64,000 nucleotides of DNA from assembly GCA_001643675.2 (NCBI GenBank), contig LSRY02000052.1, forward strand, positions 372,001-436,000, read 5' to 3'. The position numbers and the translations under genes were made by a program. Position 1 is the stretch's first letter; each line of letters opens with the position of its first letter. The notes below the pieces were generated by a model. That model was given only the letters and a program-made list of their open reading frames with translations. It searched no databases and was not told the DNA's origin. Source of the DNA: Monocercomonoides exilis PA203 (taxonomy: Eukaryota > Protista > Preaxostyla). Below, one piece after another: positions 4,801 through 24,300 of the stretch.

Positions 4801-7800
4801 CAGTGAAATGACATATTCGTATTTGATAAATGTTGAGAGCAAAAGTTTAATTAAGAACATAGCCTTCCAAATTCCATTTTCGTTATCGAGTGCAACATCG
4901 CTCATTTCTTTAACCAGCTCATCACTCACACTCACAGACTGTTCAGTTGCTCATATATCAGAGAGCACATCGAGTGTGTCCTTTGGATACAGCATTGTGA
5001 ATGCACAGAGTGGGAGTCTGAAAATGGAACGATTTGTGATTGAGGAAGGGCTGACATTCAATGATCACTCAGCGATTGAATTTTGTGAAGGAATGACGAG
5101 TGTGATTTGTTCAGGATGTAATATCAGTGGAGTAGTGAAGAATAGTGGAGATGGAGGATGGATGAAAGGAACAGTTGGAACGAGTGGAACATTGACTGTT
5201 GATGGATGCAATGTGAATGGGTGCAGTTGTGTTGGTGGAAAAGGAGGAGGAATGAATGTTGGATTGAAGGGAAATGGGAAAGTTGTTGTGAATGGAACGA
5301 GTGTGATTGATGGATGCAAGGCAGAGAATAATGGAGGGAGAGGAGGAGGGATGTTTGTTGGAATGGAGACTGAGGGATGTGGATTGACAATTGGGCAGAA
5401 TGTTGAATTTTCGAAAGATCATGAGAATGCGGCCTCATATGGGAAGGATGTGTTTGTTCATTGTTGGAATGGTGTGTTTTTGGAGTCAATAGTGAATACA
5501 AACACATTTGCCTTTTTTGACGCAAGAACCATTCCATCAGATGCATTGAAACTGAGTGGGAGTGAAAATGGGGATGAAAGTGGAATGATTCCACTGTTTG
5601 TGTATTTGTGCACAATGGGGGCAAAAGTGATTGTTGACGGGAGTGGAGGAAATGGGAAGGACCACAACCATTGTGGATTTGATGGATTTGGATGTTTGAC
5701 AATTGATTATTGCGCGAACTCAAGATTGAGCAGCACTGTGAATGAAATAGAGGTTGTCTCATCTTCTTCAATTACCAAGGAAATAACAGGACCATCATTT
5801 GGAGCGATGATTTCAGGCAGAATAGTGTTATCCGATGGAGAGAGGATGGGAGTGAATGTGAGTGATGGAGGATCAGCCACACAAGACTGGATTGTTGGAT
5901 GTTCGAGATCACTGACAATGAGCAGACTTTCATTTGTTTTGAAAGGACTGATGAATTCAAGGAGAAGTGCATTCATTCATTCAAATTCGACACTCGGTCT
6001 TACGAATTGTTCAGTCTCATTTGAAAGTGGGGCATTGACTGATGGAAAGATAGGATATAATGTGATAAACATTGATGGAGGAGTGTTGATTGTTGATAGA
6101 TTTGTGATGGATGGTTCAGTGATAATGAATGGGAAATCTCCAGTTGTTATTTCAAATGGAGTTGAATTGGAGATTTTGAATAGTAGAGTGAGTGGAGTGA
6201 AAGTGAAAGGTGGAATTGGAGGATGTTTGAATGTGGAGATGAAGGAAGGAGGGGGTGTGAATATTGAAGAAAGCAATATATCCTCAACATGTTCAGGTGG
6301 AAATGGAATGAAAGGGGGAGGGATGATGATATCAATGGGAATGGGAGGGAGTTTGGAAATGAAAAATATAAAGTTTGAGGGATGCAAAGTGCCAACAGAG
6401 GATGTTGAGGATGGAGGGAGAGGAATGGGAGGAGGGATGTTTGTGAAGCTGGCAGATGAGATGGAAACATTTGTGATGGAAGGGATGGAATTTGAGGGAT
6501 GCAATGCGTGGAAAGGGAAGAATGTGTTTGTGTCAGGATTGGATCTGAGTGAGATTGTGAATGAGAAGCACCTGAAATGGGAGATAAAGGAGGAGGAGTT
6601 GGGATCGTTGGATCAGTTGTGTGGATGGGAAAGGAAGACAACAGGAGAGGGATATGTGATTCCATTGGTTGTGTATTTGTGGAGTAATTGGAGTGGGAAT
6701 GGATTTGTTTCGAAAGATGGAGGAGGAGACTTCAGTGGGTGTGGATTTTCAGAAGCGCCATGTTCATCGATTGACCATCTGAAGACCCTTCGATATTCAA
6801 CACTTGGAGAAGGGGAAACACACATCAGCATTGTGGGATCAGGGTTGCTGAGCCATTCCATATCATTTTCATCTTCTAATTCATCAACAATTACGGTTAT
6901 TCCAAGAATGGTGATTGAAGGGACAAAGAAAGGGACAGGAGTGGTAATAAGTGATGAAGATGAGAATGATTTGTCTGATGGTTCAATGATATCCTCGAAT
7001 GTGAATCTGATACTGACAAATCTGTCATTCTTGAATCCAAATCCAAACAGTCATCATGAGATATTGATCGAATCATCAGGAACAAACATCTGTTTATCAG
7101 TCGTGGATTGCTCATTTGGCTCATTGAGAGGGATCACAGAGACAACAGGATTTTGTGTGATGAAAGTGAATGGAGGAAGAGTTATTGTTCAAGGATGTTC
7201 GTTGGATGCAGCTGGTCAGTTGAGAGGGTTCATCGCTTTCAGTGCAGTGGCAACAAGGGAGGTGACTGTGGAGGATGTGAACATCTCGAATAGAGGGGTG
7301 AAAGAGAGAAGTCTGATATCGATGTTTGAGGATGAACAGACGAATGAGATGAAAGCAAAAACAGAGATAAACAGGGGAGAAAATGGGAATTCAAACAACG
7401 AAAAAGTGGTGATAAAAGTGAATGGCTCTTCGTTCACAAACATCACAAATGGAGAAAACAGAGCAGGGGTGTTGAGTGTGGATTCATTTGCGAGGGCAAT
7501 GGAGTGTGTGTTGGAGGGGTGTTCAGTTTCGAATTGCAGGAGTGAAATGAGCGAGGAAGGAGGAGGGATGAAAGTGTGCCTGAAGAGAGGGGAATCAGAA
7601 GTGAGAGTTGTTGGATGCTCGTTGGGGATGTGCTCGTGCTCGGGGGTGGAGGGAAGAGGAGGAGGAGTGATGGTTGATGCACTTGACCCGAATGAGTGTG
7701 GAACCAGTGGATTTGGGCCTGTTGGGATAAGGATGGAGAATGTGAGGTTTTGGGGCAACGAGGCATTTGTGGGGAAGGATGTGTTCATCAGATGCGAGTC

Positions 7801-10800
7801 GATTGCCGAACAGATCAATGAGACATTGTTTGTGCTGGATCTCAGCCAGGATGCCCTGAAATCCACGAACTCCATCTGTGGGTCAGACAAGGAAAGGGAT
7901 GATGTTGATCTGATCCCCCTGATCACATTCTATTACGGCCAGCAGGTGTTTGTCTCTGCAAGTGGAAGAGATGACAGACAATGTGGGGCACAGAACAACC
8001 CTTGCCTGAGCATTGGCAGTGCTGTGAAGCACATTCAAAAAGGTGTGATGAATGCAATTCTGATTGATGGGGAAGGGGTGATTGGGGGAGAGTGTGTGAT
8101 TGGGGATATGAATGTGAAGAGTCTGAAGAAAACTCAATCCACAATCCATCTTGATGGAAAGATGGAGGCTGTGGGGGATGAAGGGAGTGTGGTTGTGTTT
8201 GTGAATGAGAGTGCTGTGGAGAAATGTGAATTCTTGTTTGGGTTGAGCTTTGAATCAGAGCATTCATGCATTGTGAAAGTGAAGAATGGAACATTGGGGG
8301 TGAGTGAGTGTTGGTGGAAGAGTGTTGGAATGATGACACTTTTGAACAGCACAATTGTGAAAGTGGAGGGTGGAGAGCTGGAGATGGAGAAATGTGTTGT
8401 CAGCTGTGTTTCCACTTCACGAGAGATATTGTCAGTCTGTGAAGGGAGCAAGGCTGCGATATATCAGCTGAGGATGAGCGATATTGAGAGCGAGGATGGA
8501 GGGATTGTTGATGTGAAGAAAGCAAGGGTGGAGGCGAAGGAGATGTCGATGAGCAACATCGCCAGACAGAACAGAGGGAGCATTGTGAAGATGATGGAAT
8601 GCACAGAAAGAGTGGATTTGATGAATTGCTCGATGAGAATGTGTTTGGGAAAAGAAGAGAGAGGATGGATGGTGAGTGTGTGGAACTGTGAGTGTGTGAA
8701 TGTTGACTGCTGTGAGTTTGATGGAGAAGAGGAAGAGAATGAAGAAAGATCAAGAAATGAGCAGGATAGAAGAGAAAGAAGAGAGGAGACATGCAAGTGG
8801 AATGGGTCAATGGTTGAATTTGAGAAGAGTGAAGCGGAGATGAAAGTGACTTCGATGAGAAACAGCAAGAAAGGGGGATTGTCAGTGAGTGGAGGAAATG
8901 TGGTGATTGAGAAAGGAGAGTTTGCGAACAACAACCCATTGATTGGAAAATATCCCTCAGCTCGGAGAAACATCTTGTGTTCGGATTCTGCTCAGCTGAA
9001 TATCATGAGTCTGAAGGGAGGAGATGGGCAAGAGAAGAACACCTCCCTTTGGATTCTGAATGATGGATGCAGTTTGATGGGGATTGTTGAGGAGCGAGCA
9101 TCACCATTGTTCATCCCTACACTGCGATCGGTGGAGACAGAGGAGAAGGAAGGGGTGCTGGATGTTGTGTTCAGGGGCACACTTCTTCTGCCATGCAACC
9201 TGTCGTTTCGCGTTGTTTCGTCGGTGGGGGATGTTGAGCAGGTGGAGACTCACGAGATAAGTGAGTCTGGATTTGTGAGTGAAGAGGAAGTGCATGGAAC
9301 AGCTGGGTTGGAGATAGTCAGGGGTGCAGAGGCGAGTGCAGAAGTGAGGGTGTGCATTTTGTTTGGAGATGGCCATTCTCCCTCGGTAACTGAGTCATTC
9401 ATCCTGAAGAACAGGAGCGAGGTTGAATCAAAGGGAGATGAAAAAATTGTTGAAAGTGGAAAGAAAGAAAAATCATTTTGGCCAATTATTGTGATTGTGC
9501 TTGTTGTGATTTTGCTGATTGTCCTTGTTGTGTCCATTGTTGTGACAATTCGATGGAGAAGGGCAAAGAATGAGAACAAAGGTCTGAGGGAGATAGTGAA
9601 TGATAATATCAGAAAAGATCCAAAGCTGATTGAGATGGTGACGATGGAGATGTCACCAGAGGAACAGTGGAGGAGGGCTGAAAGAGAAGCAGAGAAGAAG
9701 AATGAAGAGAAGATAAAGAAGAGAGTATATGGGAAACAGATGCAGCACTCAGAATCATCAGAGCATCTTCTATCAGAGAGTGGATCAACTGAATATATTC
9801 TAGGGAGAGACTCAGACAAGATCCCAGAGTGGGTGCTTGAGAAGGTTGATGAAAAGGAGATCGAGGAGGAAACAAGAAAGAGAACACCATCACCATCCAT
9901 TTCATCCATTTCATCCACTTCAACAACAGACACTTCAGATACTGACACTACATTTGTTCGATCTGAGAGCATGTGCCCAACAACATCATCGATGTCGAAT
10001 CTGGTGGATGCAATGGCATGCTCGTCTCCTCATGAGAAGTTGATTGTTGATCTGAGGGATTCATTGTTCATGCTGATTCATGGGAGAAATGAGAAGAAGG
10101 AGATGGCGATAGGCACTCTGCAGGAGAGGGAGATGACAGCTGCACAGATTTTGTTCTGGGTGGCTAATGGTGCGCTTCACTCCTTCAAAGAATGTGAAGT
10201 TCCACTTCAGTCATTATCTTATCTGAGCCCTCACATTGTGCTGTTCTCTGAGCACATGGTTATTTGCATTGTGTTGCATTCTAACTTTTTGTCGGATGAT
10301 GATTCAGATTCATCATCGATCTCATCAACAGTTGTGACATCAGCCAGTGATGATGATGACAGTGACTCTCTTCCCTCTTCAGCGTTTGAGGATGAGGATG
10401 ATTTCAAAAAAGAATGCTTGAGGTGGAAGGCCCCCGAACTGATGAATGGAACAAAGAACCATGCGACGAAAAAGACAGTTGTGTTTTCAATAGGGATGAT
10501 GCTGTGGGAGTGCTTGACACTCCAGATCCCGTTTGGGGAGTATCCGGCAGAGGTGGCGGGGCAGAAGATTGTGAATGGAGAAAGGCCAGATTGTGGAAGT
10601 ATTTCCGGCTCAGGGCTGTGTTCGGTTGTGAAAGCAATGCTCAGCAGAGAAGGGGCACATCGGCCTTCGCTGGAAATGCTAAAGAGAGAGTACATTAAAT
10701 GGGTTCCAGGCAGTGCATCAATGCTCACCGTTTCAGATGCAATTGGTGCATATGATTATTCGGATGAAGCAAAAAGTGAAGTGGAAACGAAGATATTTTT

Positions 10801-10810
10801 GAAGGAATGA
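1892..10810 (+). CDS. Giant type-I membrane protein: Cys/Gly-rich beta-helix-like ectodomain, one TM helix, C-terminal TKL-like pseudokinase (lineage-expanded family)
   Basis: Intronless 2972-aa ORF; the true start may be Met at 1982 or 2018 (MMILPLLLLL, signal-like). Repeated 'F..C....GGA(I/M)' motifs and five 'CG....(P)C.(T/S)(I/L)' caps. TM helix WPIIVIVLVVILLIVLVVSIVVTI at ~9478-9550. The kinase C-lobe motifs LRWKAPE, VFSIGMMLWECLTLQIPF and GERP are present, but HRD and DFG are not. Confidence 0.85.
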   Translation: MKENERKVKKTKIFFRRFETHGINEDIYFNMGGRNIGIAKGDMMILPLLLLLNQTMLEYENKDIDRDRPNQHDKLDDNSLQVTRREEMLLYHLQEEIMNKNALLHEVAGNPQAKRSLVKWHVSFLNSSVSMKNLDINNIKGRIFDILESSSMMLQHCSIEAETGNVCEVWRSRSNVYMKNITIENTKQISTSRTTALIDAEDLSSFFFEECNIVDKMFEAGSSLICDGRVGLASVSRCSFQNISSKGTFGVQSTSKEWERCSFSDSAVERVDCLYYGIIVSQTKASMTLMNTSICGCSNTNVDPSKRNEFDTGNIEISDASFQSVKSTDVNGGCLCFTGTSKSIVKRCIFSECSVIREISEPSGGAIGISGNGNHEVAFCFFSNCSSYRMAGGLFYDGNEKITVRDSTFESCSSMHYGAIDFYMKRGIDGTIVSNLKFELCSSSEHGSALAFDKSNSAPVVSDCLFDSCICTNNGGAITFVVSVTNGENISISYCFFSNNVAKNGNDINIFSNWSTFVTEEKIIKCFSVSEGNRVWVNDVQHNDWLPNPPSNADPICISFRGTDSEGCGYHAHECQTISFGLRRRTSTEVLLVQRGNYTESEITFDTNLELTGAEMTETRLSWKGKSENGALFFVAGQTLKVSDITLIHGLSDSGESSILLWIDGGLAEFENLFVTCDKNQNSPLVSSLISLQSGIARFKKVLFSSIEQLNCSLLDFRDRSEFEIENCSFVSIVRNVGDGSVISIAVENTEKLELNGIRFEGCKCARGNGGAMHVTLNEGGEVRIGNESVVHATLCEVPSEQQWRGCGGWMYLLLKERASDFILQDIVFSECGGWAGKNLFMDAEDLSAVANMEHIKFEILIEEERGREAMGYEGGKRDYEIPLRVFFTVPFPEEGYVGGERSLDFSGCGFLSHPCSTLGKIVELRFENSERNIIINDGFELAEVVSMAGSYEWEVYCTTNKTNVNVNVPSEMTYSYLINVESKSLIKNIAFQIPFSLSSATSLISLTSSSLTLTDCSVAHISESTSSVSFGYSIVNAQSGSLKMERFVIEEGLTFNDHSAIEFCEGMTSVICSGCNISGVVKNSGDGGWMKGTVGTSGTLTVDGCNVNGCSCVGGKGGGMNVGLKGNGKVVVNGTSVIDGCKAENNGGRGGGMFVGMETEGCGLTIGQNVEFSKDHENAASYGKDVFVHCWNGVFLESIVNTNTFAFFDARTIPSDALKLSGSENGDESGMIPLFVYLCTMGAKVIVDGSGGNGKDHNHCGFDGFGCLTIDYCANSRLSSTVNEIEVVSSSSITKEITGPSFGAMISGRIVLSDGERMGVNVSDGGSATQDWIVGCSRSLTMSRLSFVLKGLMNSRRSAFIHSNSTLGLTNCSVSFESGALTDGKIGYNVINIDGGVLIVDRFVMDGSVIMNGKSPVVISNGVELEILNSRVSGVKVKGGIGGCLNVEMKEGGGVNIEESNISSTCSGGNGMKGGGMMISMGMGGSLEMKNIKFEGCKVPTEDVEDGGRGMGGGMFVKLADEMETFVMEGMEFEGCNAWKGKNVFVSGLDLSEIVNEKHLKWEIKEEELGSLDQLCGWERKTTGEGYVIPLVVYLWSNWSGNGFVSKDGGGDFSGCGFSEAPCSSIDHLKTLRYSTLGEGETHISIVGSGLLSHSISFSSSNSSTITVIPRMVIEGTKKGTGVVISDEDENDLSDGSMISSNVNLILTNLSFLNPNPNSHHEILIESSGTNICLSVVDCSFGSLRGITETTGFCVMKVNGGRVIVQGCSLDAAGQLRGFIAFSAVATREVTVEDVNISNRGVKERSLISMFEDEQTNEMKAKTEINRGENGNSNNEKVVIKVNGSSFTNITNGENRAGVLSVDSFARAMECVLEGCSVSNCRSEMSEEGGGMKVCLKRGESEVRVVGCSLGMCSCSGVEGRGGGVMVDALDPNECGTSGFGPVGIRMENVRFWGNEAFVGKDVFIRCESIAEQINETLFVLDLSQDALKSTNSICGSDKERDDVDLIPLITFYYGQQVFVSASGRDDRQCGAQNNPCLSIGSAVKHIQKGVMNAILIDGEGVIGGECVIGDMNVKSLKKTQSTIHLDGKMEAVGDEGSVVVFVNESAVEKCEFLFGLSFESEHSCIVKVKNGTLGVSECWWKSVGMMTLLNSTIVKVEGGELEMEKCVVSCVSTSREILSVCEGSKAAIYQLRMSDIESEDGGIVDVKKARVEAKEMSMSNIARQNRGSIVKMMECTERVDLMNCSMRMCLGKEERGWMVSVWNCECVNVDCCEFDGEEEENEERSRNEQDRRERREETCKWNGSMVEFEKSEAEMKVTSMRNSKKGGLSVSGGNVVIEKGEFANNNPLIGKYPSARRNILCSDSAQLNIMSLKGGDGQEKNTSLWILNDGCSLMGIVEERASPLFIPTLRSVETEEKEGVLDVVFRGTLLLPCNLSFRVVSSVGDVEQVETHEISESGFVSEEEVHGTAGLEIVRGAEASAEVRVCILFGDGHSPSVTESFILKNRSEVESKGDEKIVESGKKEKSFWPIIVIVLVVILLIVLVVSIVVTIRWRRAKNENKGLREIVNDNIRKDPKLIEMVTMEMSPEEQWRRAEREAEKKNEEKIKKRVYGKQMQHSESSEHLLSESGSTEYILGRDSDKIPEWVLEKVDEKEIEEETRKRTPSPSISSISSTSTTDTSDTDTTFVRSESMCPTTSSMSNLVDAMACSSPHEKLIVDLRDSLFMLIHGRNEKKEMAIGTLQEREMTAAQILFWVANGALHSFKECEVPLQSLSYLSPHIVLFSEHMVICIVLHSNFLSDDDSDSSSISSTVVTSASDDDDSDSLPSSAFEDEDDFKKECLRWKAPELMNGTKNHATKKTVVFSIGMMLWECLTLQIPFGEYPAEVAGQKIVNGERPDCGSISGSGLCSVVKAMLSREGAHRPSLEMLKREYIKWVPGSASMLTVSDAIGAYDYSDEAKSEVETKIFLKE

Positions 10811-11603: not shown

Positions 11604-14078
11604 ATGTCTTATTCTGGATTGCCACAAAAGATAATGGAAGGGGAATGGGACGGAGTTCTGAATGATCTTCAATTTACGGAAATAAAAGCTCTCTTTGTAT
11701 TCGATTTGCTGGAGGAAGTGTGATAAATAAATTTGACTTTTTCATGTTATTTAATAACATACTTTTGGAATAAAAAATTCGATAAAGATTATTAATGAGT
11801 GCTCAGCTATTTCTGAATTTGAAATTGCATGGAAAATTTTGGTTGAAACAGGTAAATGAATTTTAATAACAATTAAATTTATTTTCATTTTCTTTAATTA
11901 GATATGTCGCAATTAAAACATTCAGATCCCCAGAGATACGCAAGACTTTTAATTCGTTTAAGAAATAGAGAAAAAACAGCAAAACTCGAAACTTTCTCCT
12001 CTTGTCGAAAGAAAATCCTCGAAAAATTACTCGAAGAAGTTAATGCTATGAACAAAGGAAAATGTTCTTCTTCTTTTTCAACTTTTATCAAAGAATTTGA
12101 GCAGAAACCCTCGAAAAGAAGCCTTCAGCATACATCTTTCCCTTCTCAAAAAGAAACAAGCAAACTTCCGCCTATAAGATTATGCCATCACATTGCCTTA
12201 GTTGGGAATATGAGCGCATTTCAACCTGAAGCTTCACGGACAGCACATAAAAGAAATCCCTATTCATTTGCTTCTCTTTGTGCATCTAGTCTGATTTTCT
12301 CTTCAACTGGAATGACACTTATTATAGGTACAAATGATGGAAGAGTAGCTGAATTTGATTGCAACAGTGCTCAGAAACTGAAGGAGCTTGGAGTTAACAG
12401 TTCACTCTTTTTAATGGCAGGACGCAAAAAGGAACAAGAAGTTCAAAAGAAGAAAGAGGAAATTGGGGAAGTGAGACGAGGAGAACAAGGAAGAATTATA
12501 ACTTCTATGAAATTTTCAAAGGACGGAGAAATTTTTGGATGCGGAGATAACAAAGGAGATGTGTTTTTATTTGACTGGAAAATGGGAATATGTGCAAGAG
12601 CATTTCACGCTGACGAAAAGAAGAAAGAAAGCAAAAAGGTGCATTCAATGGAGTATAATTGCAAGTCAGAAGATCCCTCGAAGGAAGAACCCGAGCTTGA
12701 AGCAGACCATCCTGCCATAACTTCACTGTGCTTCAGCAAAGACGGTTCACATGTGCTTTGTAGCACCTCCTTTTATCAGCCCAACGCGCACCTCCTTCGC
12801 AACACCTCCTCAACAGCAACGTCATCCCAGTCTGTTGCATTGTCATCTGGATTTTCCAGCACTGCGCTTCAGGAAGTGATTGACGGGTATGTGTGCTATT
12901 ACTCATTGCCTGAAAATATCATAAAGCGAAGACTCTCTGCTACAAGCGGTGATTCCTCGTGCTTGTCTTCTGAAAAATCTGGCTGGGGCAATCGCCACAG
13001 CGTTTCAGAGGGCATCTCCATCGACTGTGTCTGCTTTTCTGGAGACTGGAAAGCAGCAGTCGGTGGATGCAGCGACGGAAGAATAAGAATCTGGGAGATA
13101 AAATCGCAGCTGCAAATCACAAACATATTAATTCCTCAGTTCGCCACTTATCAGCTGACTTCTTCTGGCTCAGCAAGCAGTACAGCATCCAGTTCGAAAA
13201 CTCAATCACATTCTAATTGGAGAAGAGGTAGCGAGAGCATTCATCGGCCAATTCGGTGGGTTGAAGCAGATCCGCTTCAGAAGGATCAGATTCACGTTAT
13301 GGGCGAGACAGGCACAATATGCACAGTCACTCTGAAAGGGGCTGTTGTGTCGCAAAGTGTGCTTCCTCCGATTCCGAAGCATGTCCCTTTGCAGAAGCAG
13401 CTGAGCATCGATGGCGATGAAATCGAGGGAAGTTCAACAGGTCGCCCCAATGAAACTGCAGTTGACGAAGGCTTACTTTCAGAAGCTGCTCAGAAAAGCA
13501 AGAAAACTTCGGCACGAGGTGTGATTGAAGAGGAAGAAGACGCAGTTGTTTCTGGATGCTTTCTCAACGAATGCTCCATGTTTGTCGGTGCCAGCGAGAA
13601 TGGAGTAATTCGAATGGCACAAATATCAGTCACTTCTCCATCTCCAGCATTTTTGGCTGCGTGGCCGTCTCAGCTCGAAGTGCAATACCAGCGCGATGGA
13701 TTTGCAGCGACTGAACATTATGCAGTTGTTTCAGCTGGAGTAGGGCGAGCACTTTCTATTGCTGCACATCCATCACTTGGCGTGGTTGCTATCTCTGGAA
13801 GAAAGGGAGCTGTAGAGATATGGGTGCCTGACAAATCCGAAGATGGGAAACCAAAGGTGGAGGACATTGGAACAGATATTGAACAATTTAAGGAAGAAGA
13901 CAACCTTTTGAGAACTCAAGAAGAATTATCTGAAAATTTGTTTGAAGGGGAGCAAATTTCGAAACAAATAAAAAAGAACACGTCTATTGAAGAAGAAACT
14001 TATGAAGACGAAGATGACAAATGGTCGGCCTTATTGTCTACAAGAATCGATTCAAAGAAGAGGAAACAAACAGGTTGA
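11604..14078 (+). CDS. SMU1: WD40-repeat spliceosomal protein SMU1 (CTLH + WD40), divergent; 3 exons
   Basis: Exons 11604-11717, 11788-11851 and 11902-14078 join in frame via GT-AG introns. The N-terminus 'IMEGEWDGVLNDLQ...FDLLEEIINE...MSQLKHSDPQRYARL' matches the SMU1 CTLH region. The C-terminal 'SIAAHPSLGVVAISGRKGAVEIWVP' matches SMU1's last WD repeat. Confidence 0.75.
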
Positions 14079-14132
14079 AAACGATTTTTTAAATGTTAAA
14101 CAATTTTTAACCCCATAATAATATATCAATTA

Positions 14133-15454
14133 ATGTCTTTGCAGTCATTATTTGATTCTTGGAAGATTGAAAAGGGCGACATCATTTCGTTTGTTGGAGG
14201 CTTGAATTAATTTAAATTAATAACAAGCTGAAATTAGTAAATTGTTTTTCATACTTTTTAATTATCAAATATGACAATTTTTGACGTTTTCATATTAACA
14301 GGAGGTGGAAAATCGACAAGTTTGATGATACAATAATAGTTCTTATAACAAAAAATTTAACGTTCCAGCAATGAGAAAATTAGCTCATTACATTTCTGAT
14401 AAACTTGGGTGGAAAGTGATAATGACAACAACAACAAAAATAGGTGCAGATCAAGCTGAAGGAGAAATCATATTTTATGAAGATTTGAAACAAATGAAAG
14501 ATGCAATATCTTCATATTTCAAAAGTGATTCATGCACCAATCATTTGTTAACTATTGGCCTAAAATGCAATGGGTATTTTCTTTAAAAATCTATTTTTTG
14601 TATAATATAATCAAATTATATCAATACAGCCGCAAGATAATTGGAATTTCACCAGAATGGGCTGACGAGCTTATTGGTATGATATTTTTGGAGTTTTTTC
14701 CTTTTTTATCTTTATAATTTTAGAGACGACTGATGTACTTCTTGTTGAAGCTGATGGAGCAGCAATGTGTCCTTTAAAAATGAGTGCATTTTTTGAGCCC
14801 GTCATGCCTCTTAGAACAACTCATGTTGTTGTTTGCGTCGGAGCTGATTCAGTCAATAGACAAATCAAGGATAAATCTGTTCACAGACCGCTTCTATTTT
14901 CAGATGTTCTTTCAAAGCCAATGAATTCAACGCTTCTTGTCGAAGACGTAGCGAAAATAGTAATTTCTCCAAATGGGCATTTTAAGGGTTTTTTTGCACT
15001 TCATCCTGCGACTTGTAACTCGACATTTTTGACCATGGGAAGACTCTCTTCGACCCCTCCTTTTTTCATCAGTGGCCAGCCTTCATTTGTCGTGTGCACT
15101 AAAGCAGAACAAGTGACAGACGCGTCTTCCTCATCTGTTCTCTCCAAATCTGATGATGATTCTGCATCATCTTCACTTCAGCACATATCCTGTGAAAACC
15201 ACCTTCGTCTATCTGTTTTGATCAATCAAAAAAACACCTTTTCAGAAGAAGCTGCTCAGTTGTATGAATGTTTGACAGAACAGCTTTTCCACAAAGATGC
15301 TCATTCTTCGACTTTCCCATCAAAATTATCAAAACCTACAAATCAGCTTTCTCATCCTCTGCTCGAACAAATCAAAGGAACACCGACCACAATTGGTGTG
15401 ATTTCTCCAGCTTCTGATGAGCTGCTGTTGATGAAAAATGATATAATTTCTTGA
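14133..15454 (+). CDS. yqeC: YqeC-family protein (selenium-dependent molybdenum hydroxylase accessory protein), 5 exons, ~355 aa
   Basis: Exons 14133-14199, 14302-14319, 14369-14573, 14630-14676 and 14724-15454 total 1068 nt in frame. They give IISFVGGGGKSTTMRKLA...KVIMTTTTKI...KIIGISPEWADEL...DVLLVEADGAAMCPLKM...EPVMP...VGADSV...VHRPLLF, the YqeC motif series in the correct order. Confidence 0.85.
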
Positions 15455-16177
15455 GCTTTGACATCATAATTTAGAAATTTGTTTAACCTCGTTGTTTTTT
15501 ATTCGGGCAACTAATACATATTGTGCGACGAATAAATGAAACTCTTAAGACTCATTTGACAGATGACAGAAAAGATTCATCAAAATAAAATGTTCAAAGA
15601 AAAAGGTTAAAAAAAGTTTAAGTGAAAAAGATAAAAAAAAAGTAAATAAAAAATTAAGTTAGGCAGAGATTCAAAGAAACACCGTAAATATTGAAAAAAA
15701 TACTCATTATTTTCTTTCGTAAATCAAAAATAATTCCATCAAATAAGGCAAACTTTCTTGAAAACATTCGCCAAAAAGAAAAGGAATGATCCATTTGGCA
15801 AAGAACAAATGAACTAAAAAACAAGATAAATTGTCAGAAAACAAGCAAACACACAAAAACTCAACATTTGTATTTAATAAAAGATAAATCCACTTATCAG
15901 AGGCAAAGACAGAAAAAAAAAATCAGCTCATCAAAGAAAAAATAAAGTAAGCCTTCTTTAAAAAAAACAAACTTTAAATCCTAAAAAAATAATTAAAAAA
16001 AAAAAAAGGTTAAAGAAAGCAAAATAAAAGCAAATAACATTAACACGCTTATAAAAAAAACTTAAAAAATAAGACCAAAACTCACAAAAGAATATTTACC
16101 AAAACACACTCTATATGATAAAGGAAAGAAAAGTACTCTTCATTTGAAAGCAATACGAACTCTGAAATCAAGAAAAA

Positions 16178-17769
16178 CTACAACTGTTCCTGTGTCAGCT
16201 TCTTAGCGCTCTTTGTCACAGGGCAGTCCTTTGAGATATGGCCTCTCATGCCACAAACAAAACAAACTCTGGTGTCTTGGAACGTGCATTCTTTCGAAGA
16301 ATGCCCCATCCGCCCGCAGCGGAAACAGGAGTGTCGGGAGATAAAAAGCTCTTTGTTGTGGTGAGGGCAGTGGATGAACATATGTCCTTTCTGTCCGCAA
16401 TGGTAGCAACGCTCCCCTTGAGCACGCCGGCAGAGCTTCGCATTGGCACTTGCATTTTCAGTTGAATCATCCACTTTTTCTCCTTCGGCACCTGCCCCTT
16501 CATCAGCATGAGCGATGCTCTGCTCATGCTTTTTGGATTTTTGATATTCTTTGTGCATTTTTTGTAGCAAACGTTTGATATCTCCTCCTTTTTCTTCTGA
16601 AACAAGAGATTCCCCGTTGAATGCAAACTTCTTTCCTAAATCATCTGTAGCCTTTTTATCAATATCATCATATTCTGCCTCTTCTTCAACGAATGCTGTT
16701 TCAGAAAGTTCACCACGCACAACTCCATGTTGTTTGCTTGATTCGTCTTCATTTTCTGTTCTTTCTGAGAATCCATCTTTTGCTGGAACAGGAATTCTTC
16801 CAAAGAATTCGCCCTCAGAATAGTTTCCATCAGATCCAAAAGAACTTCCAGACAAAACAACAGAAGTGCGCGTGAAAGTCACTTCACTCATCGACTGAGC
16901 AGCTAAAGTGGATGGCTGATAAACAGGAGCTGTTGCAACAGTGACCACCGACTGCCCGAGAAAAGGTGGTTTTAATGTGACTGTTTTTCCGTGTGAATCA
17001 ACGAACGAGGTGAACACTGGAGGAGGAAGTGTGTGCTGTGGCTGGCGCGGATTCACGATCTGAGGCTGTATTTGGATTGGAGTGGATACTTGTGTTTGTA
17101 TCTGTGACTGGGGCAAAGGCAAAGCTTGGAGTTGAGGTTGGAGCTGGAGCTGGGACAGGGTTTGTGGCTGGGGCTGAGGCTGTGCTTGAGGCAGGAACTG
17201 ATACGCTGGTTGAAGATGCAGCTGCGGAGTAAACTTAAAGGCAGGTTGTTGTTGTTGTTGTTGTTGCTGCTGCACCAAGACGGGCTGAGCGTATGGAGCA
17301 AATGGCTGTGTGTAATTAACAGGCTGGCCAACAGAAAGAGTCGGAGTGAAGACTGGACAGGACTGTACACTAAGCGGAGAGAGTTGGGCAGAAGCAAAAG
17401 AGGAGTTCATTGGCTCTGGATTTGTGCAGATTTGAAGAGCATCTGCCTGCGACGGTGGGAAAGTGCTCTTGGCTATCTCATAAGGCACATTTACGGTAGC
17501 ATATGAGCTAATCGAAGGAGTGAAACAGAACGAATCACTTGTGCTGTTCGGATGCGCAGGGTCAACAAACGAAGGGGCAGACACAGCAGATGACTGCAAC
17601 TTGAACTGACCAAAAGAAGAAGAAGGAGAAGAAGAGACATCAGGGAAAGATGCAACGTTGTCTTGTGGAGCACAAAATGATGACTTTACAGATGGGGCTG
17701 AGGAAAATTGCGCAAACGGAGGGAGGGATGGAATTACAGGAGCATCTCTATTCTCATTCTCATTAAGTG

Positions 17770-17800
<31 letters not shown>

Positions 17801-20800
17801 TACAGAGGCAGAAATAACATCATTTCCTTCAGATAAGGTTGGAGCAATAGCTGAGAGAGGAAGAGAAGGAAGAGAAGGAAGAGGAGAAAGTGTAGGCGAA
17901 GGAGAACTGGGATGCTCTTTGATCTCTTTTTCAGATGACAGTTTGGAAGAATTAACTGAAATAGTGGAAGAACCATCTGTGAATGCCAACGATGACAACA
18001 AAGGCACTTCATTCGACTGAGCCCCAGGCGAAAGTGCAGTTGCGACTTCAGCCTGGTCTGAGGGCAGCTGTGATATCAGCTCAGACGCACTGCGGATGGA
18101 GGCATTGGGAGACGATGACTGCGAAGCCGATCGGCGGCGCTTGCGATGGCGCCGGCGGAGAAGAGACGACGAAAGAGAGATAGAAACATCAGACTCATCG
18201 TCGGAATCAGACGAAGACTCAGAAATCTCTTCTTCAGCTGCTTTTATTGTCTTTACTGTTTCCACTGCTTCTTCATGTGATACTGTTTTGTTGATCGGTT
18301 GTTCAGTATTGTTGTTGACAATGCCATTCTTGCTGTTATCACAAAGCTCAACAATTGCTTTGTTGCTGTCTGATACATCCAGCGTTATTGGAGAGGTATG
18401 TCGGAGCGATGATTTCGAACAAATATCAGAACATCCACAAACAATACCATCATCCTCAACTTCCTCTTCAACAGATGATTCACTTTTCAAAACAAGATCT
18501 CCATCAGATAAATCAAATCGATCCTTTTTTATTGAAAGATCACAGGCATCTAACGATGGCTCTTGGTTGCCTGCTTTTTCAGCAACGGAGCTGTCACAAA
18601 GCACAAGCTCTTGGGTCACATCAGCAGCAATACGCACATCATTTACATTTACATCTTTGGAAGCCAATTCTTCCTTTTCTTCAGACAATTGATTTCCATT
18701 ACATTTTACAGAACTGAAATTTTCAATGATTTCAGTGAGCTTTTCATAATCTTCATTCAAATCAGATTCTTTTCTTTCCGAAACCAGTACAAGTGGGCTA
18801 CTATCCAATTCAATCTCTTTTTTTGTCTGTTCACTGACAACAGCAGACATATCAGAAGCCACTTCGCCAACATCCTCTGGATTGAGCTGTTCAATCAGCT
18901 GCAGCGGCTGAGACATTGTGGAATCCATTGACAGCATCCTCTTCTTCCTCTTCTTTTTCTTCTTCTTTGAACCATCTTCGTAAATAAACTCAATCACTTC
19001 CTCGTCTTCCTCTGCTCCTTCTTTGTTGTCTTCTCCTTCTCTTCTTCTCTTCTTTATCTTTCGCACAATCCTCTGCAATGCTATTTCCTCTATCTTATCT
19101 CCTATTTGCGCACTTTCCATTGATCCTTTGCTGCTAACAGATCCAATTCCAGCTGCGGAAAACGACGAAGACACAGACGACTGCACACACTCAGCCAACT
19201 GCATTCGCTCAGACAGATCAGATGGACTGTCTAAACAGTTGTTGATCTGAACAACAGAAGCATTTACATTCGAAACAGACGAATTCACAGCCAATAAGTT
19301 TGGTTTGCTCGGTGCAAGCTGATCGTCTTTGAAAGGCGACTGGGCGGAATGCAACGTGTCAAAGTGGCAGAACGAAGGCGACACGGCAGACAGCTCAGCA
19401 CAGCTGTCGTATTCGTTGATTGAGAGTGAGTGCATTGCCTGAGACGAGCGCGGTGAGAGGGAGCTGCCACACGAGGACGAGACATCTGAAGAGAAGGCAG
19501 CTCCTTCCTCTGATGCCGGCAGAGTATTGGACTGAGACACACTCAATGAAGAGTTCAATGAAAATGCCTTTCGTGTGATTGTGTCAGTCAGAAGAAACGA
19601 GTTACTTGACGATTGCAGTGTAAGCTCATTGGACGGAAGAAGGCTGAAGCCACTTGCAGCATCTGCTGTTGTGCTTGGTGCCAATGCAAAAACTGTGCCA
19701 GAAGGTGCATTTTCAGGAGAAGAAGACGATGAAGAAGAATGCGATGGAGAAGAAGGAGAAACAGAACGAAAAGAAGAATTTTCTGCTCCGGCAGCAGTTG
19801 TGGCAGGCGCAGGAACCGAAGCGCGTTTTGACTCTTCTTCTTCAGCATATGCAAAGCTGTGTGGAACTGAGGCTGACAAAAGAGGCGACAACGGATTTGG
19901 ATAAGCAGAAGGCGACACTGAATTCTCTGTTGCACTTTGGAGAGCCGACTGAAAAGATGAAGATGACGACGATGGATCTGCCAGATACGAAGGATACGAA
20001 GAAGCCGAAGAATACGGAATGGTCTGAAATTCAGTTGCTGTCTTTGAAGACGATGCAATATCATTTGAAGGAATCTGAAGTTCTATTGTTTGCTTTGACA
20101 CAGGTGAAACAGACGATTCTTCCGAAAGAGAATGAAAACAGCGTGCGGACGGGGACAAGGCTGAATGAACAGCCGAACGGTAAGGAAAGCCTCCATATAC
20201 AAACGTATTTACAGCAGGTTTAACAGATGAATTAGCATCTACAGAAAATAAAGGATGCACAAGAAGTTCCGCGGCTGTTGGCCTCATTGAAGAATCTGTT
20301 ATAGTGCAATCTTTTATAAAACTGAGCATTTTTTCAGAGCAATTTATATACGGAAGTGGAAGATTTTGTTGGAATTTTAAATTCTGTAAGTAGTTTGGCA
20401 AGTTTTGATACGAGATATTTACAAATGGATGTGTTCCATTAAGTAGCTCGATTGCAGTGATTCCCAACGACCATATGTCCGACTTAACATTTGCATCTGT
20501 GTCGCTTGCAACTTCTTCTGGAGCAGACCAAGGAGTGATTATCTGCATCACACCACGACCAATTGTTTGTGGAAACGATAAAAGACGGCTGGTTCCAAAA
20601 CAAGATAAGAAAATGTCACCATTACATGTAATTATAATATTTGACGCATTAAGCACAGCATATCTCTTTCCAGCGGTATGAAGATGAGCAAGGATCACGA
20701 GTATTTCAAAAAGCATTTTTGAAACTTCTTTTTCTGAAAATGGACCTTTTTGAGATAAAACTTGTTTTGCAGTATTTGAGTGATAGTCAACAACTATCCA

Positions 20801-21141
20801 TGTTTTATCTCCAACTATCAGACTTCCGCGAAACGGAACTATTCTAGGTATTTTATTCCGTGCCAAAAAATCAAGTTCTGCTCGTAATTCATGTGCATTC
20901 TCCCCCAGCAAAGAATTTGATATGGCCAATATTGCACAAAGAGTTCCACTTAACTTGTGAAAACTGAATTAGGTTATTCAAACAAAACAAAACCAAAAAA
21001 TTTTAACGTTGTAAATAAATTTTTTAAGCATTTCTTTTTTAAAAAATCAACACAAACGCTTGAAAGTAACTAACCAAATTTTCTGGATGTGGATTTTCCA
21101 ATATGTCAAAAAAATTTGAAACGCTGGATTGATGGATATCC
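16178..21141 (-). CDS. STE20/MST-like pseudokinase with long low-complexity linker and three C-terminal CCHC zinc knuckles; start codon unresolved
   Basis: Main exon 20963-16178 plus a likely upstream exon 21141-21058 (FFDILENPHPENLVSYFQA|FHKLSGTLCAIL). Kinase motifs TPWSAPE, KSDIWSLGITAIEL and RPTAAELLVHP. Knuckles CYHCGQKGHMFIHC, CFRCGRMGHSSKEC and CFVCGMRGHISKDC at 16408-16223. Confidence 0.8.
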
Positions 21142-21355: not shown

Positions 21356-24300
21356 ATGTTCAGAACGCCGAATTCGTCAGCGCTTCAGTCGTCAATTTTT
21401 CGGCTAATTACAGCAAGCGATGTGCATTCCATAGTGCTGACTTGCATCATGACCCATCTTAACCGAAATGATGCTGCACAAATTACCTCATTTCATGATT
21501 CTTTGTACAAGTCATCACCAGCTGCAAATTTACAATCAATAAAAGAGTACATTCAAAAGTTTGTTTTTTTTAGAAATTTTAGTTTCGAAATTTCAATGAA
21601 AACTTGCCTTTTTGTTGATTAATTTAATTTTAAAGATTGATGAAATCAATGATGTGCAGCCCTCTTTGCTTTATCTTTTCGATGATTTACTTAGACCGCC
21701 TGCATAAAAGTCGATGCTTGATACTTACGACCCCGACTGCGCATCGTGCAATTCTTGTGAGGTTTATTTTGATATAATTTATCTTTTTTTAGAAATTTAT
21801 TTTTTTAAAGCACTGTAATTGCTATAAAATATTTGGACGATCGTTATTTTTATAATACATATTACGCAAATCTCGGAGGATTAACTGTTTCGGAATTTAA
21901 CAGACTTGAAGTCGATTTTCTATCAAGATTAAGATTTCATCTATTTGTTGAGAATAAAGCGTGCGAAAATTTTCTGACGAGATTGAAAAATTATACAGAC
22001 AGCTTGCGAACAATTAGTCCTTCTTTATCTGTAAATCATTCTCCTCCTTCTCCATCCCCATCGCAAAAGGCTATAACAAGCCCGAATTCAGATGCGTCAC
22101 AAAATCAAAACGATGGCCAATCACCTTCCACATCATCACAATCTGCGTCTCGCTCATCTGCAAATCCTTCATCTTCGTCTCCAACACCACCATCAGCTGG
22201 AATATCTCCAACTTCTCAGGATTTTGCCTCTCCACCTAGATACAATTCACCAATTATTGTTCATACTCAGTCGGCGCCTCGCTCAAACTCTTCGGCTAAC
22301 TGTCAAGGATTTCCTCATTCGTCAGGAGGAGCAAATGCCCAATCACCATTTGGCTCCTTGGCTCCATTTGGGATGCCTTATCTTCTTTTCCCACCTTCTG
22401 GGCCACTTCCCATTTCGCAGCAGATCCCATCAAATCGATACAATCGGCAGTCACAAGGGTCTTCTTCTCAGGGTGTGTCTGTTGGGAATGTGATGCCACT
22501 GGGTGCGTCTTCTGCGTCATCTGTTTCCTCTGTCTCTGTGGCTGAACAGATTCCGTCTGTGGTGCCCATCGCAGGTGTTGCTGGAAACCCTCCACTGACA
22601 GACTTCACTACACTTCTAACACAGATGACGCAGGCTTTCCTACCTCCCCCATATCCCCCTCAAATAGCACCATTCTTTTCACCTTCTGAGCTATTCCACC
22701 ACACAAATCACTCATCACGCTCAACCTCTTCTGCTCTTTCATCCTATTCCTCCACGCCCTCTTCTTCCTCTGGCTCTTCCTCTTCCTCAGCATCAGTCTC
22801 TCTTGCATCACCTTTGTCTGCTCTGTCCGCCTCATCGCTGGCACAGCTGTCGTCTTCTGCCAACGGCGTTGCTGGACTGGCAATGATGATGGATGCACTC
22901 ACCAGCGATGCCTGTATGGCTCCTCATACAAACCCTCATTCACGCTCTTCTCTGTCTGCTTTGTCTTCCTCCTCCTCTTCCTCTTCTGTAGCTGCACCTC
23001 ACAACAACTCCATTTCAGTTGCTGGCACTTCTTCTGCTGGGATAGCGTCTTCTTCGATGTCTCATCCTTTTTCACACACACAATTCTCTTCATTCGCACC
23101 TGTCAACGAGCCTTTCAATTCAACCATCGAAAACCCAACTCTTTTGCAGCCTTTGTCAAGCGCCATTTCAGCTTCGCTATCATCGCATCAGTCTTCAAAG
23201 ACATCTTTGCTTTCTTCTTCGTCGTGTTCATCTTCTTCTTCTTCAAATACACATGATTCATCATCATCTTCTTCTTCTTCTTATTCATCCACTTCATCGT
23301 CCCATCCACCAAATGAAGGCAATTCACTTTCGAATTCTCAAAAATCATCTCATTCAGCTGGTGACAGAACTGATAAGAACAACCAAAAACCATCTAATTG
23401 TTATTCTTTGTCTTCGTCTGCAGCATCTGAATATGACAACAACAACAACAACAACAATAATAATAACAAGCAGACATCAACATCATCTGAAATGAGCAAA
23501 GGAAAGAAAGCAGAAGCTGAAAGTGACACTGCACTCACATCATCATCATCGTCGTCGTCATCAGCTTCTTCTTCTTCTTCTTCTGCGCCTGCATCTGCAT
23601 CATCATCTCATAACACATCATCCACTTCACAAGGATCTGCTTCTTCTGCTGCTTCTTCTTCAACCTCATCCTCATCCTCATCTTCCTCTTCCTCTTCAAC
23701 CACAACAGCTGCTCCTTCATCTTCATCATCATCATCAATTTTATCCACATCAAAACTCTCATTCAGAGCACGCCCATTCATTTCCCAACTCCACTCAACT
23801 AAAAGCACTAAAAGTTCATCCACAAAGAAATCATCATCATCATCTTCTTCTTCTTCTTCTTCCTCGTCTTCTGCTTCTTCATCTTCTTCATCCTCATCCT
23901 CATCATCTTCTTCTTCCTCTTCTTCTTCAACGCACAAATCGTCCACCACCAAACCCCACACCACATCTCGCCATCGCCCCCATGAAGATGAGCCCTTCTT
24001 CTCTAATTCTCCCTCTCAATCTCTGTTTTTTCCAGACGAAACACAATTTTATGCGCTTCCAGTGACAGACGCACCATCTAATGGAATGTCATCTTCTATG
24101 AGTCCATCAGGCATCAACACAACATCTTCATCAGTTTCTGAAGGGAATGGATCAACATGTGCAGACAATGCGATGGATGATAAGAGATTAGTGCATTCAG
24201 GGAAGAACGAAAGGCAGGAGAAGCTGTTTGGGAAGGAGGAGGAAGGAAGGAGAAAGGATATGGATGCACATCGTGAAGGAGAGAGAGGGAAAGAGAGAGA

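Follow-up and report, generated by a model that had tools for sequence, protein, structure and literature searches.

What does a gene of a bacterial selenium pathway do in the nucleus of a protist? The question is raised by a window of 64,000 nucleotides (nt) from the oxymonad Monocercomonoides exilis, a protist without mitochondria (contig LSRY02000052.1, positions 372,001 to 436,000), which carries at 14133-15454 on its forward strand the gene yqeC; positions given without a contig refer to this window. Together with YqeB and the selenophosphate synthetase SelD, YqeC forms the published marker combination of the labile selenium cofactor of molybdenum hydroxylases (PMC9312934, PMC5029168), the least understood of the cellular uses of selenium. 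In agreement with an earlier note on this DNA, which knew the trait only from prokaryotes, the literature that we searched describes it from bacteria and archaea alone (PMC5029168, PMC9312934); it is found in about 6% of bacterial genomes, mainly those of anaerobes, and no paper in the searchable literature ties it to a protist. Here we find that yqeC is a genuine, spliced and transcribed five-exon gene, and that it is nuclear in M. exilis. As to its role, we consider it fairly probable that the laterally acquired YqeC helps to mature the molybdenum cofactor (Moco) of xanthine dehydrogenases (XDHs), in company with YqeB, XdhC and a SelD-YedF protein and with selenium as the ligand.

The coding sequence sums to 1068 nt, or 355 codons and a stop, in five exons interrupted by four introns. 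Exon 1 (14133-14199, 67 nt) contains the ATG and codes for the first beta strand and the N-terminal half of the P-loop (…ISFVGG); intron 1 (14200-14301, 102 nt, 20% GC) then splits a glycine codon of the P-loop in phase 1, and exon 2 (14302-14319), a microexon of 18 nt, supplies the remainder of this loop (GGKST), including its lysine. Beyond intron 2 (14320-14368, 49 nt, GT..AG) lies exon 3 (14369-14573, 205 nt), which encodes helix 1 and the VIMTTTTKI strand and corresponds to positions 14-60 of the TIGR03172 profile. Intron 3 (14574-14629, 56 nt, GT..AG, 14% GC) separates it from exon 4 (14630-14676, 47 nt), which includes RKIIGISPEWADELI with the near-invariant family lysine K76, and intron 4 (14677-14723, 47 nt, GT..AG) is followed by exon 5 (14724-15454, 731 nt), whose stop codon occupies 15452-15454. 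In exon 5 the Walker-B-like VEADGA comes first, then PLK, EPV and VHRP; a disordered, Ser-rich stretch of about 60 residues is inserted before NQKN, and the C-terminal strands close the protein. The introns are AT-rich, with 14-24% GC each and 19% overall, against 38.7% in the exons.

All four exon joints are present in RNA, as the earlier note had proposed to check. The evidence consists of assembled contigs from four runs (X1-X4) of one metatranscriptome study, labelled synthetic metagenome, aligned to positions 13900-15700; as contigs, they are uninformative on expression level, strand and transcript ends. The junction 14573|14630 appears in all four runs, 14676|14724 in three of them with a matching loose end in X4, 14319|14369 in X1 and X2, and the joint of exons 1 and 2 in X2 and X3. 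This last joint is ambiguous by 3 nt: the contigs place it at 14197/14300, with three ambiguous bases, or run from 14200 to 14369 with the letters of the microexon between. The microexon itself is seen as a piece 14300-14319 in X1 and as 17 letters between joints in X2. We assign intron 1 to the GC..AG type at 14200-14301 because this is the sole reading of the ambiguous joint that has an AG end. Since the RNA contigs start only at 14175, we infer that translation begins at ATG 14133, with no earlier start codon between it and the preceding stop in its frame; the N-terminus encoded from there aligns with the Streblomastix orthologue and with an unannotated Blattamonas exon. The protein of about 355 residues that the earlier note had pieced together, with SFVGGGGKST split between exons 1 and 2, VIMTTTTKI, VEADGA..PLK, EPVMP and VHRP, is thus recovered with every motif in place.

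To which family does this protein belong? For the searches the exons were submitted singly, with exons 2-5 represented by a deposited segment, MONOS_1588:785-1116. This segment passes the NCBIfam equivalog model of YqeC, TIGR03172, with 126.2 bits (cut-off 73.05), settling in its favour the profile check that the earlier note had named; exon 5 alone reaches 72.0 bits and exon 3 19.6 bits, and exon 5 also matches Pfam PF19842 (55.1 bits against 27.6). An exhaustive HMMER search with exon 5 against 1.84 billion representatives brought up 1010 relatives at E<=1e-3; of the 150 best, almost every one has a length typical of YqeC. A faster word-index search with the same exon gave zero relatives at this threshold, which reflects the limit of the index, and a single-sequence search of the PDB sequences gave noise only. 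The P-loop VGGGGKST, the counterpart of the family's Walker-A motif GGGGK[ST]T, spans the junction of exons 1 and 2 in the RNA contigs, and VIMTTTT and VEADGA, for the TTTT strand and the Walker-B-like EADG(A), complete the motif set of the family. In an alignment of 106 sequences the invariant residues G1, D100, G101 and K108 are kept in M. exilis, and G2, K3, T26, T28, K76, E98, E114, P115 and R144 are likewise present. The C-terminal G4-like motif NK[AV][DE], which is our own reading of a family motif and no curated criterion, is represented by NQKN in M. exilis, with the asparagine retained and the lysine displaced, by NQAD in Blattamonas and by NKAD in Paratrimastix.

The AlphaFold model has a mean predicted local distance difference test score of 75.5, with values above 90 over residues 1-180, and places the Ser-rich disordered insert at residues 188-246. 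Its nearest solved folds according to VIA-align (Z 9.5-7.4) are FlhF, SRP54/FtsY, MinD/ParA, UreG, HypB, CooC and MeaB; MobB is not among the fold matches listed. A profile search of the PDB sequences matches FtsY and ArsA, and Foldseek against the PDB yielded nothing below E 1e-3. The predicted fold is that of a SIMIBI-class P-loop nucleoside triphosphatase (NTPase), and by its family matches the gene encodes a 355-residue member of the bacterial YqeC family.

The earlier note had allowed that, in a genome devoid of its partners, the gene would be an orphan put to some other use. Its partners were sought by a six-frame search of the 82.3-Mb assembly with hidden Markov models (HMMs), in which control genomes matched as expected, and yqeB, selD, xdhC and XDH-family genes were all found. 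YqeB lies at C11:291649-292635 in three exon pieces, which score 122, 45 and 35 bits against TIGR03309; one of its exons is 63% identical to a bacterial YqeB. SelD is encoded on the minus strand at C2:1004361-1005555, split by an intron (164 and 105 bits), and its last exon runs on into a YedF-type domain (TIGR03527, 79 bits), so that the whole SelD-YedF fusion covers C2:1003575-1005555 of the minus strand. A gene of the XdhC family of Moco chaperones, also intron-split, occupies the minus strand of C14:1218407-1219996, with pieces matching PF02625 and NF045664. With YqeC, YqeB and SelD all found in the M. exilis genome, the published marker set SelD+YqeB+YqeC is complete in a eukaryote, and from these genes we infer a putative non-selenocysteine selenium pathway, as the earlier note had surmised. 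SelD is by itself neither specific to the trait nor an orphan here, since the selenocysteine pathway, which M. exilis possesses (PMC6759080), also needs it. In the supplement of PMC10703272, Streblomastix is listed with SEPHS and without SEPSECS, and Blattamonas with neither; both species have yqeC, and the pattern may represent an ‘orphan SelD’ case or an annotation gap.

Candidate clients are at hand as well. Three genes of the xanthine oxidase (XO) family, on contigs C9, C14 and C60, combine 2Fe-2S, flavin adenine dinucleotide (FAD) and Moco-binding (MoCoBD) domains, in agreement with the three XDHs per species in the Preaxostyla supplement (PMC10703272). Each paralogue consists of two long open reading frames (ORFs) separated by a short gap (L012:3822-8398, which is the C9 gene, L013:4232-8660 and L014:2995-7741, in coordinates of the respective stretches). 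Among solved structures bovine XO comes closest to them, with 545 bits, and their best models are TIGR02965 and TIGR02963, with about 600 and 206 bits. The C9 protein, the only paralogue aligned to bovine XO, keeps the equivalents of the catalytic Gln767, Arg880 and Glu1261; it has Gln at the position of the substrate-binding Glu802 and Glu at that of Thr1010, so that the substrate may be other than xanthine. These profile matches assign the M. exilis XDHs to the eukaryotic, sulfido-type lineage and not to the clostridial family of selenium-dependent XDHs. The papers on the genomes of M. exilis and Preaxostyla refer to selenocysteine machinery, and XDH figures in them solely as a 2Fe-2S protein (PMC6759080, PMC10703272); they state that purine catabolism is lacking and make no mention of YqeB, YqeC or molybdenum (PMC6759080, PMC10703272).

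The same six-frame searches of the genome returned no match for MoaA-C (PF06463), MoaC (PF01967), MoaE (PF02391), MoeA_N (PF03453) or the MoCF_biosynth domain of MogA and MoeA (PF00994), and the Preaxostyla supplement tables (PMC10703272) have no rows for Moco biosynthesis proteins. The searches likewise returned no match for the tRNA 2-selenouridine synthase SelU, the second selenium trait, for MocA (TIGR03310), which the earlier note had listed among the genes to be sought, or for a MOSC domain. A Moco supply of its own, the usual accompaniment of the trait and no formal criterion for it, is thus missing among the genes found in M. exilis. The apparent lack of Moco biosynthesis beside three intact XDH genes points to salvage of the cofactor from prey.

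The bacterial surroundings of yqeC give a further indication of its function. Of 80 bacterial yqeC loci, 53 carry, at a distance of no more than 6 kb, a gene homologous to the YqeB of M. exilis (up to 63% identity); 28 have a molybdenum-hydroxylase large subunit and 19 an XdhC-like gene. In nine long bacterial matches (P0050, P0057, P0058, P0076, P0112, P0121, P0126, P0129 and P0137) YqeC is joined to a nucleotidyltransferase domain of the MobA/MocA type, which precedes it in some and follows it in others; these fusions connect YqeC with handling of the cofactor as such and constitute a concrete functional lead for the family. The Moco nucleotidyltransferase MobA has a P-loop GTPase, MobB, as its partner.

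How, then, might YqeC act? We propose that it serves as a nucleotide-driven helper in the last steps of Moco maturation for the three XDH-family enzymes, with the bacterial-type YqeB, the XdhC-family chaperone and the SelD-YedF synthetase as its partners. SelD-YedF would supply activated selenium; YqeB and XdhC would keep hold of the cofactor during the installation of selenium as its terminal ligand, in the manner of the bacterial selenium-dependent molybdenum hydroxylases; and hydrolysis of nucleoside triphosphate by YqeC would drive the hand-over or insertion of the cofactor, as MobB assists MobA. The Moco itself would come from ingested bacteria, because no genes for its biosynthesis were found. 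For the part of this proposal that puts selenium on the molybdenum centre of XDH, the genes at hand tilt the balance to slightly above even. Extended to the whole group, it becomes a tentative scenario, which we hold to be possible rather than probable: Preaxostyla would make no Moco, would salvage it from ingested bacteria, and would finish it with the acquired XdhC, YqeB, YqeC and SelD-YedF, placing selenium instead of sulfur on XDHs of the eukaryotic type.

Could the same genes serve a purpose that does not involve selenium? YqeC, with YqeB and XdhC, would then be an NTPase in the manner of MobB, confined to the handling, protection or insertion of Moco, perhaps derived from prey, with sulfur as the terminal ligand provided by a MOCOS-like NifS protein and SelD-YedF employed for selenocysteine only. 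Much of what weighs against the selenium proposal speaks for this alternative. The sulfido-type lineage to which the XDHs belong normally bears a sulfido ligand, and against the model of selenium-dependent XDH, TIGR03311, the M. exilis enzymes score only 137-230 bits (cut-off 830), which leaves them outside the client families TIGR03311 and TIGR03313. The annotation of M. exilis includes MONOS_10551, a class-V aminotransferase resembling MOCOS, from which sulfur could be delivered in concert with XdhC; in P. pyriformis a gene of this type is found at a distance of 1.6 kb from yqeC. The recurrent fusions with MobA/MocA point to nucleotide chemistry of the cofactor and not to selenium, selenocysteine machinery is present in M. 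exilis (PMC6759080; PMC10703272 supplement), deletion of yqeC alone has no clear phenotype in Clostridioides difficile (PMC11448449), and YqeB or YqeC alone may have roles unrelated to selenium (PMC5029168). The selenium proposal also has to accommodate the change of the motif resembling a guanine-specificity element to NQKN, and the lack of Moco genes comes from six-frame HMM searches of an intron-rich genome, where the same searches did find the split YqeB, SelD, XdhC and YqeC. Several observations speak against a role without selenium: YqeB and YqeC are found along with SelD, the combination published as the marker of the trait (PMC9312934); YqeB is as strongly conserved as its 63% identical exon indicates, and yqeB and selD mutants of C. 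difficile resemble each other in losing growth on xanthine and urate (PMC11448449). The MOSC domain, which binds Moco in eukaryotic sulfurases, and MocA, the fusion partner of YqeC, both gave no match in the six-frame searches, and with no MocA found, the part that MobB would play for MocA cannot be the task of YqeC in M. exilis. We regard maturation of XDH with selenium as the better account, and the selenium-independent role as less likely, if the main rival.

Two further doubts concern the gene itself. The best database match of yqeC is MONOS_1588, an M. exilis protein of 1116 residues filed as ‘uncharacterized protein’, whose residues 61-784 correspond to the upstream WD40-repeat ORF (11904-14078, plus strand) and residues 785-1116 to exons 2-5 of yqeC, exon 1 being skipped. 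Were this model correct, the YqeC domain would be the C-terminal part of a WD40-YqeC fusion and exon 1 would be unused. The deposited splice of the end of the WD40 ORF onto exon 2, and the position of the two ORFs on one strand only 54 bp apart, are what the fusion has in its favour. The RNA contigs of two runs, however, link 14175-14199 straight to exon 2, and among them there is no contig with a junction from about 14075 to 14302 and none covering 13900-14143. Exon 1 encodes elements present in every member of the family, namely the beta strand and the initial glycines of the P-loop, the Streblomastix and Blattamonas orthologues align over it and lack a WD40 fusion, and the WD40 ORF has a stop codon of its own, located 54 bp before the ATG of yqeC. 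The junction of exons 1 and 2 in RNA and the conserved N-terminus lead us to favour the stand-alone five-exon gene and to consider the fusion very improbable; MONOS_1588 was filed as uncharacterized because it is a WD40-yqeC chimera from which the real exon 1 is omitted. Still more remote is an artefact or relic, in the form of bacterial contamination of the assembly or of a transferred gene decaying without function. The family is otherwise prokaryotic, the G4-like motif has diverged and a disordered insert of 60 residues has appeared, all of which such an explanation would accommodate. Against it stand four introns that are spliced out in RNA, an intact frame with the invariant family residues kept, a large contig (window C50:372001-436000; the deposited record with MONOS_1588 measures 633 kb) with eukaryotic neighbours, a host-like base composition (38.7% GC in the exons and 42-44% in the adjoining ORFs), and orthologues in four Preaxostyla species that share intron positions and, in S. 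strix, use the host's variant code. Contamination in particular is rejected on the grounds of RNA splicing, the eukaryotic neighbours, the Streblomastix in-frame stops read as Gln, and composition, and the earlier note's argument from introns and from a place between eukaryotic genes is upheld by the RNA-supported introns, the WD40 ORF upstream and the Ser/Thr kinase downstream.

That kinase gene, with zinc knuckle(s), lies at 16178-20929 on the minus strand and is convergent with yqeC. Contigs containing spliced yqeC extend up to about 2.1 kb beyond 15700 into its 3' end, as noted for positions 15455-17800, which suggests either overlapping 3' ends or merging of contigs. Two plus-strand ORFs of the window are very long, at 1892-10810 (2972 residues) and 21833-32680 (3615 residues); the former has no Pfam match at E<=1e-3.

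Where did the gene come from? The related species in which the earlier note had suggested looking do carry it. YqeC homologues are deposited for Blattamonas nauphoetae (BLNAU_13210) and Paratrimastix pyriformis (PAPYR_3382, under the UniRef name YqeC), and another lies on SNRW01010758.1 of assembly GCA_008636045.1, a record that itself names YqeC and an assembly that we take to be that of Streblomastix strix. In the Streblomastix gene seven in-frame TAA or TAG codons are aligned to Gln, with zero TGA, which fits a nuclear variant code. The P-loop intron is found at the identical codon and phase in M. exilis, Blattamonas and Streblomastix, and the 18-nt microexon is common to M. exilis and Blattamonas at the same place. 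The deposited BLNAU_13210 begins at an internal Met; upstream exons left unannotated on JARBJD010000112.1 encode the N-terminus and the P-loop (within positions 4740-5010 of that stretch, exon 1 runs up to 4822, the 18-nt microexon occupies 4866-4883 and exon 3 begins at 4930). The P. pyriformis yqeC model has 1486 residues, mostly a low-complexity tail (JAPMOS010000013.1), and the gene at 1.6 kb from it codes for a class-V aminotransferase of 614 residues, which, to judge from its locus-tag number, probably corresponds to PAPYR_3385, the ‘MOCOS’ entry in the Novak supplement.

A careful tree of 50 rows joins the three oxymonads in a clade with support of 100/97. In its maximum-likelihood topology Paratrimastix is not sister to the oxymonads, and monophyly of the four Preaxostyla species occurs in 6% of bootstrap trees; the approximately unbiased (AU) test on the same tree does not reject the joint grouping (p = 0.40), and a quick tree of 130 rows unites all four sequences with support of 90 in the Shimodaira-Hasegawa-like approximate likelihood ratio test (SH-aLRT). 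The closest homologues in bacteria, found with a 12-row alignment, share only 28-40% identity and are scattered over many phyla; most stem from metagenome-assembled genomes of uncultured bacteria labelled as Thermodesulfobacteriota or ‘delta proteobacteria’, Chloroflexota, Bacillota, Actinomycetota, Atribacterota or Spirochaetota, and Tectomicrobia are represented as well. The trees single out no bacterial donor of the Preaxostyla yqeC. We read the gene as a lateral transfer from a bacterium that took place before the oxymonads diverged, its age being indicated by the intron positions that the three oxymonad orthologues share; as monophyly is not rejected by the AU test, the transfer possibly dates to the Preaxostyla stem. 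Since then yqeC has gained spliceosomal introns, a host-like composition and the disordered insert. Of the old lateral transfer from gut anaerobes that the earlier note had supposed, the age is retained and the donor is not supported: none is named by the trees, and yqeC also occurs in the free-living Paratrimastix.

If the scenario of scavenged Moco and a selenium ligand on the XDHs is true, M. exilis would provide the first example of the ‘third’ selenium trait among eukaryotes, and this may be part of the reason why its cultures require bacteria. The genes found also suggest that purines or aldehydes can be oxidized in an organism described as being without purine catabolism (PMC6759080), and they raise the idea that the cells need their bacterial prey as a source of Moco, and selenium for the activity of XDH. 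The marker genes, dispersed, intron-bearing and lineage-wide in the same genome as XDHs of the eukaryotic type, offer a new eukaryotic setting for the study of YqeB and YqeC, and two public gene models, MONOS_1588 and BLNAU_13210, can be corrected.

How does the M. exilis system compare with those already known? With bacterial YqeC (TIGR03172/PF19842; Escherichia coli, C. difficile) the protein shares the P-loop, TTTT, EADG, PxK, EP and HR motifs, the predicted SIMIBI fold and passage of the same equivalog model, and it likewise resides in one genome with YqeB, SelD, XdhC-like and molybdenum-hydroxylase genes. In contrast to the bacterial genes, yqeC of M. exilis is nuclear, with four spliceosomal introns and an 18-nt microexon, and its partners are unclustered, on contigs C11, C2, C14, C9 and C60. 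The protein has 355 residues with a Ser-rich disordered insert of about 60, whereas bacterial members have 220-270, and NQKN replaces NK[AV][DE]; neither MocA nor Moco biosynthesis was found by the six-frame search of its genome, and its candidate clients are fused XDHs of the eukaryotic type.

YqeC resembles MobB in being a small SIMIBI-type NTPase linked to a MobA-like transferase, as suggested by the bacterial fusions, at least nine in number, and by general knowledge of MobB; it differs in coming from another family with no detectable sequence match, and its transferase partner was not found in M. exilis. The terminal ligand of XDH is matured by XdhC with NifS4 in Rhodobacter capsulatus and by MOCOS/ABA3 in eukaryotes. 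The end proposed here is the same, namely setting of the terminal chalcogen of Moco and insertion into an apoenzyme of the XDH family, and M. exilis too has an XdhC-family gene and a MOCOS-like NifS domain; those systems, however, install sulfur and do so without YqeB, YqeC or SelD, and M. exilis gave no match for the MOSC domain that eukaryotic MOCOS contains. Finally, Caenorhabditis elegans takes up dietary Moco (PMC9793310, PMC7849362), and M. exilis, if uptake is true, would likewise be a eukaryote that obtains Moco from its bacterial food. The worm also makes Moco of its own, whereas in M. exilis uptake is suggested by missing biosynthesis genes beside intact XDH genes.

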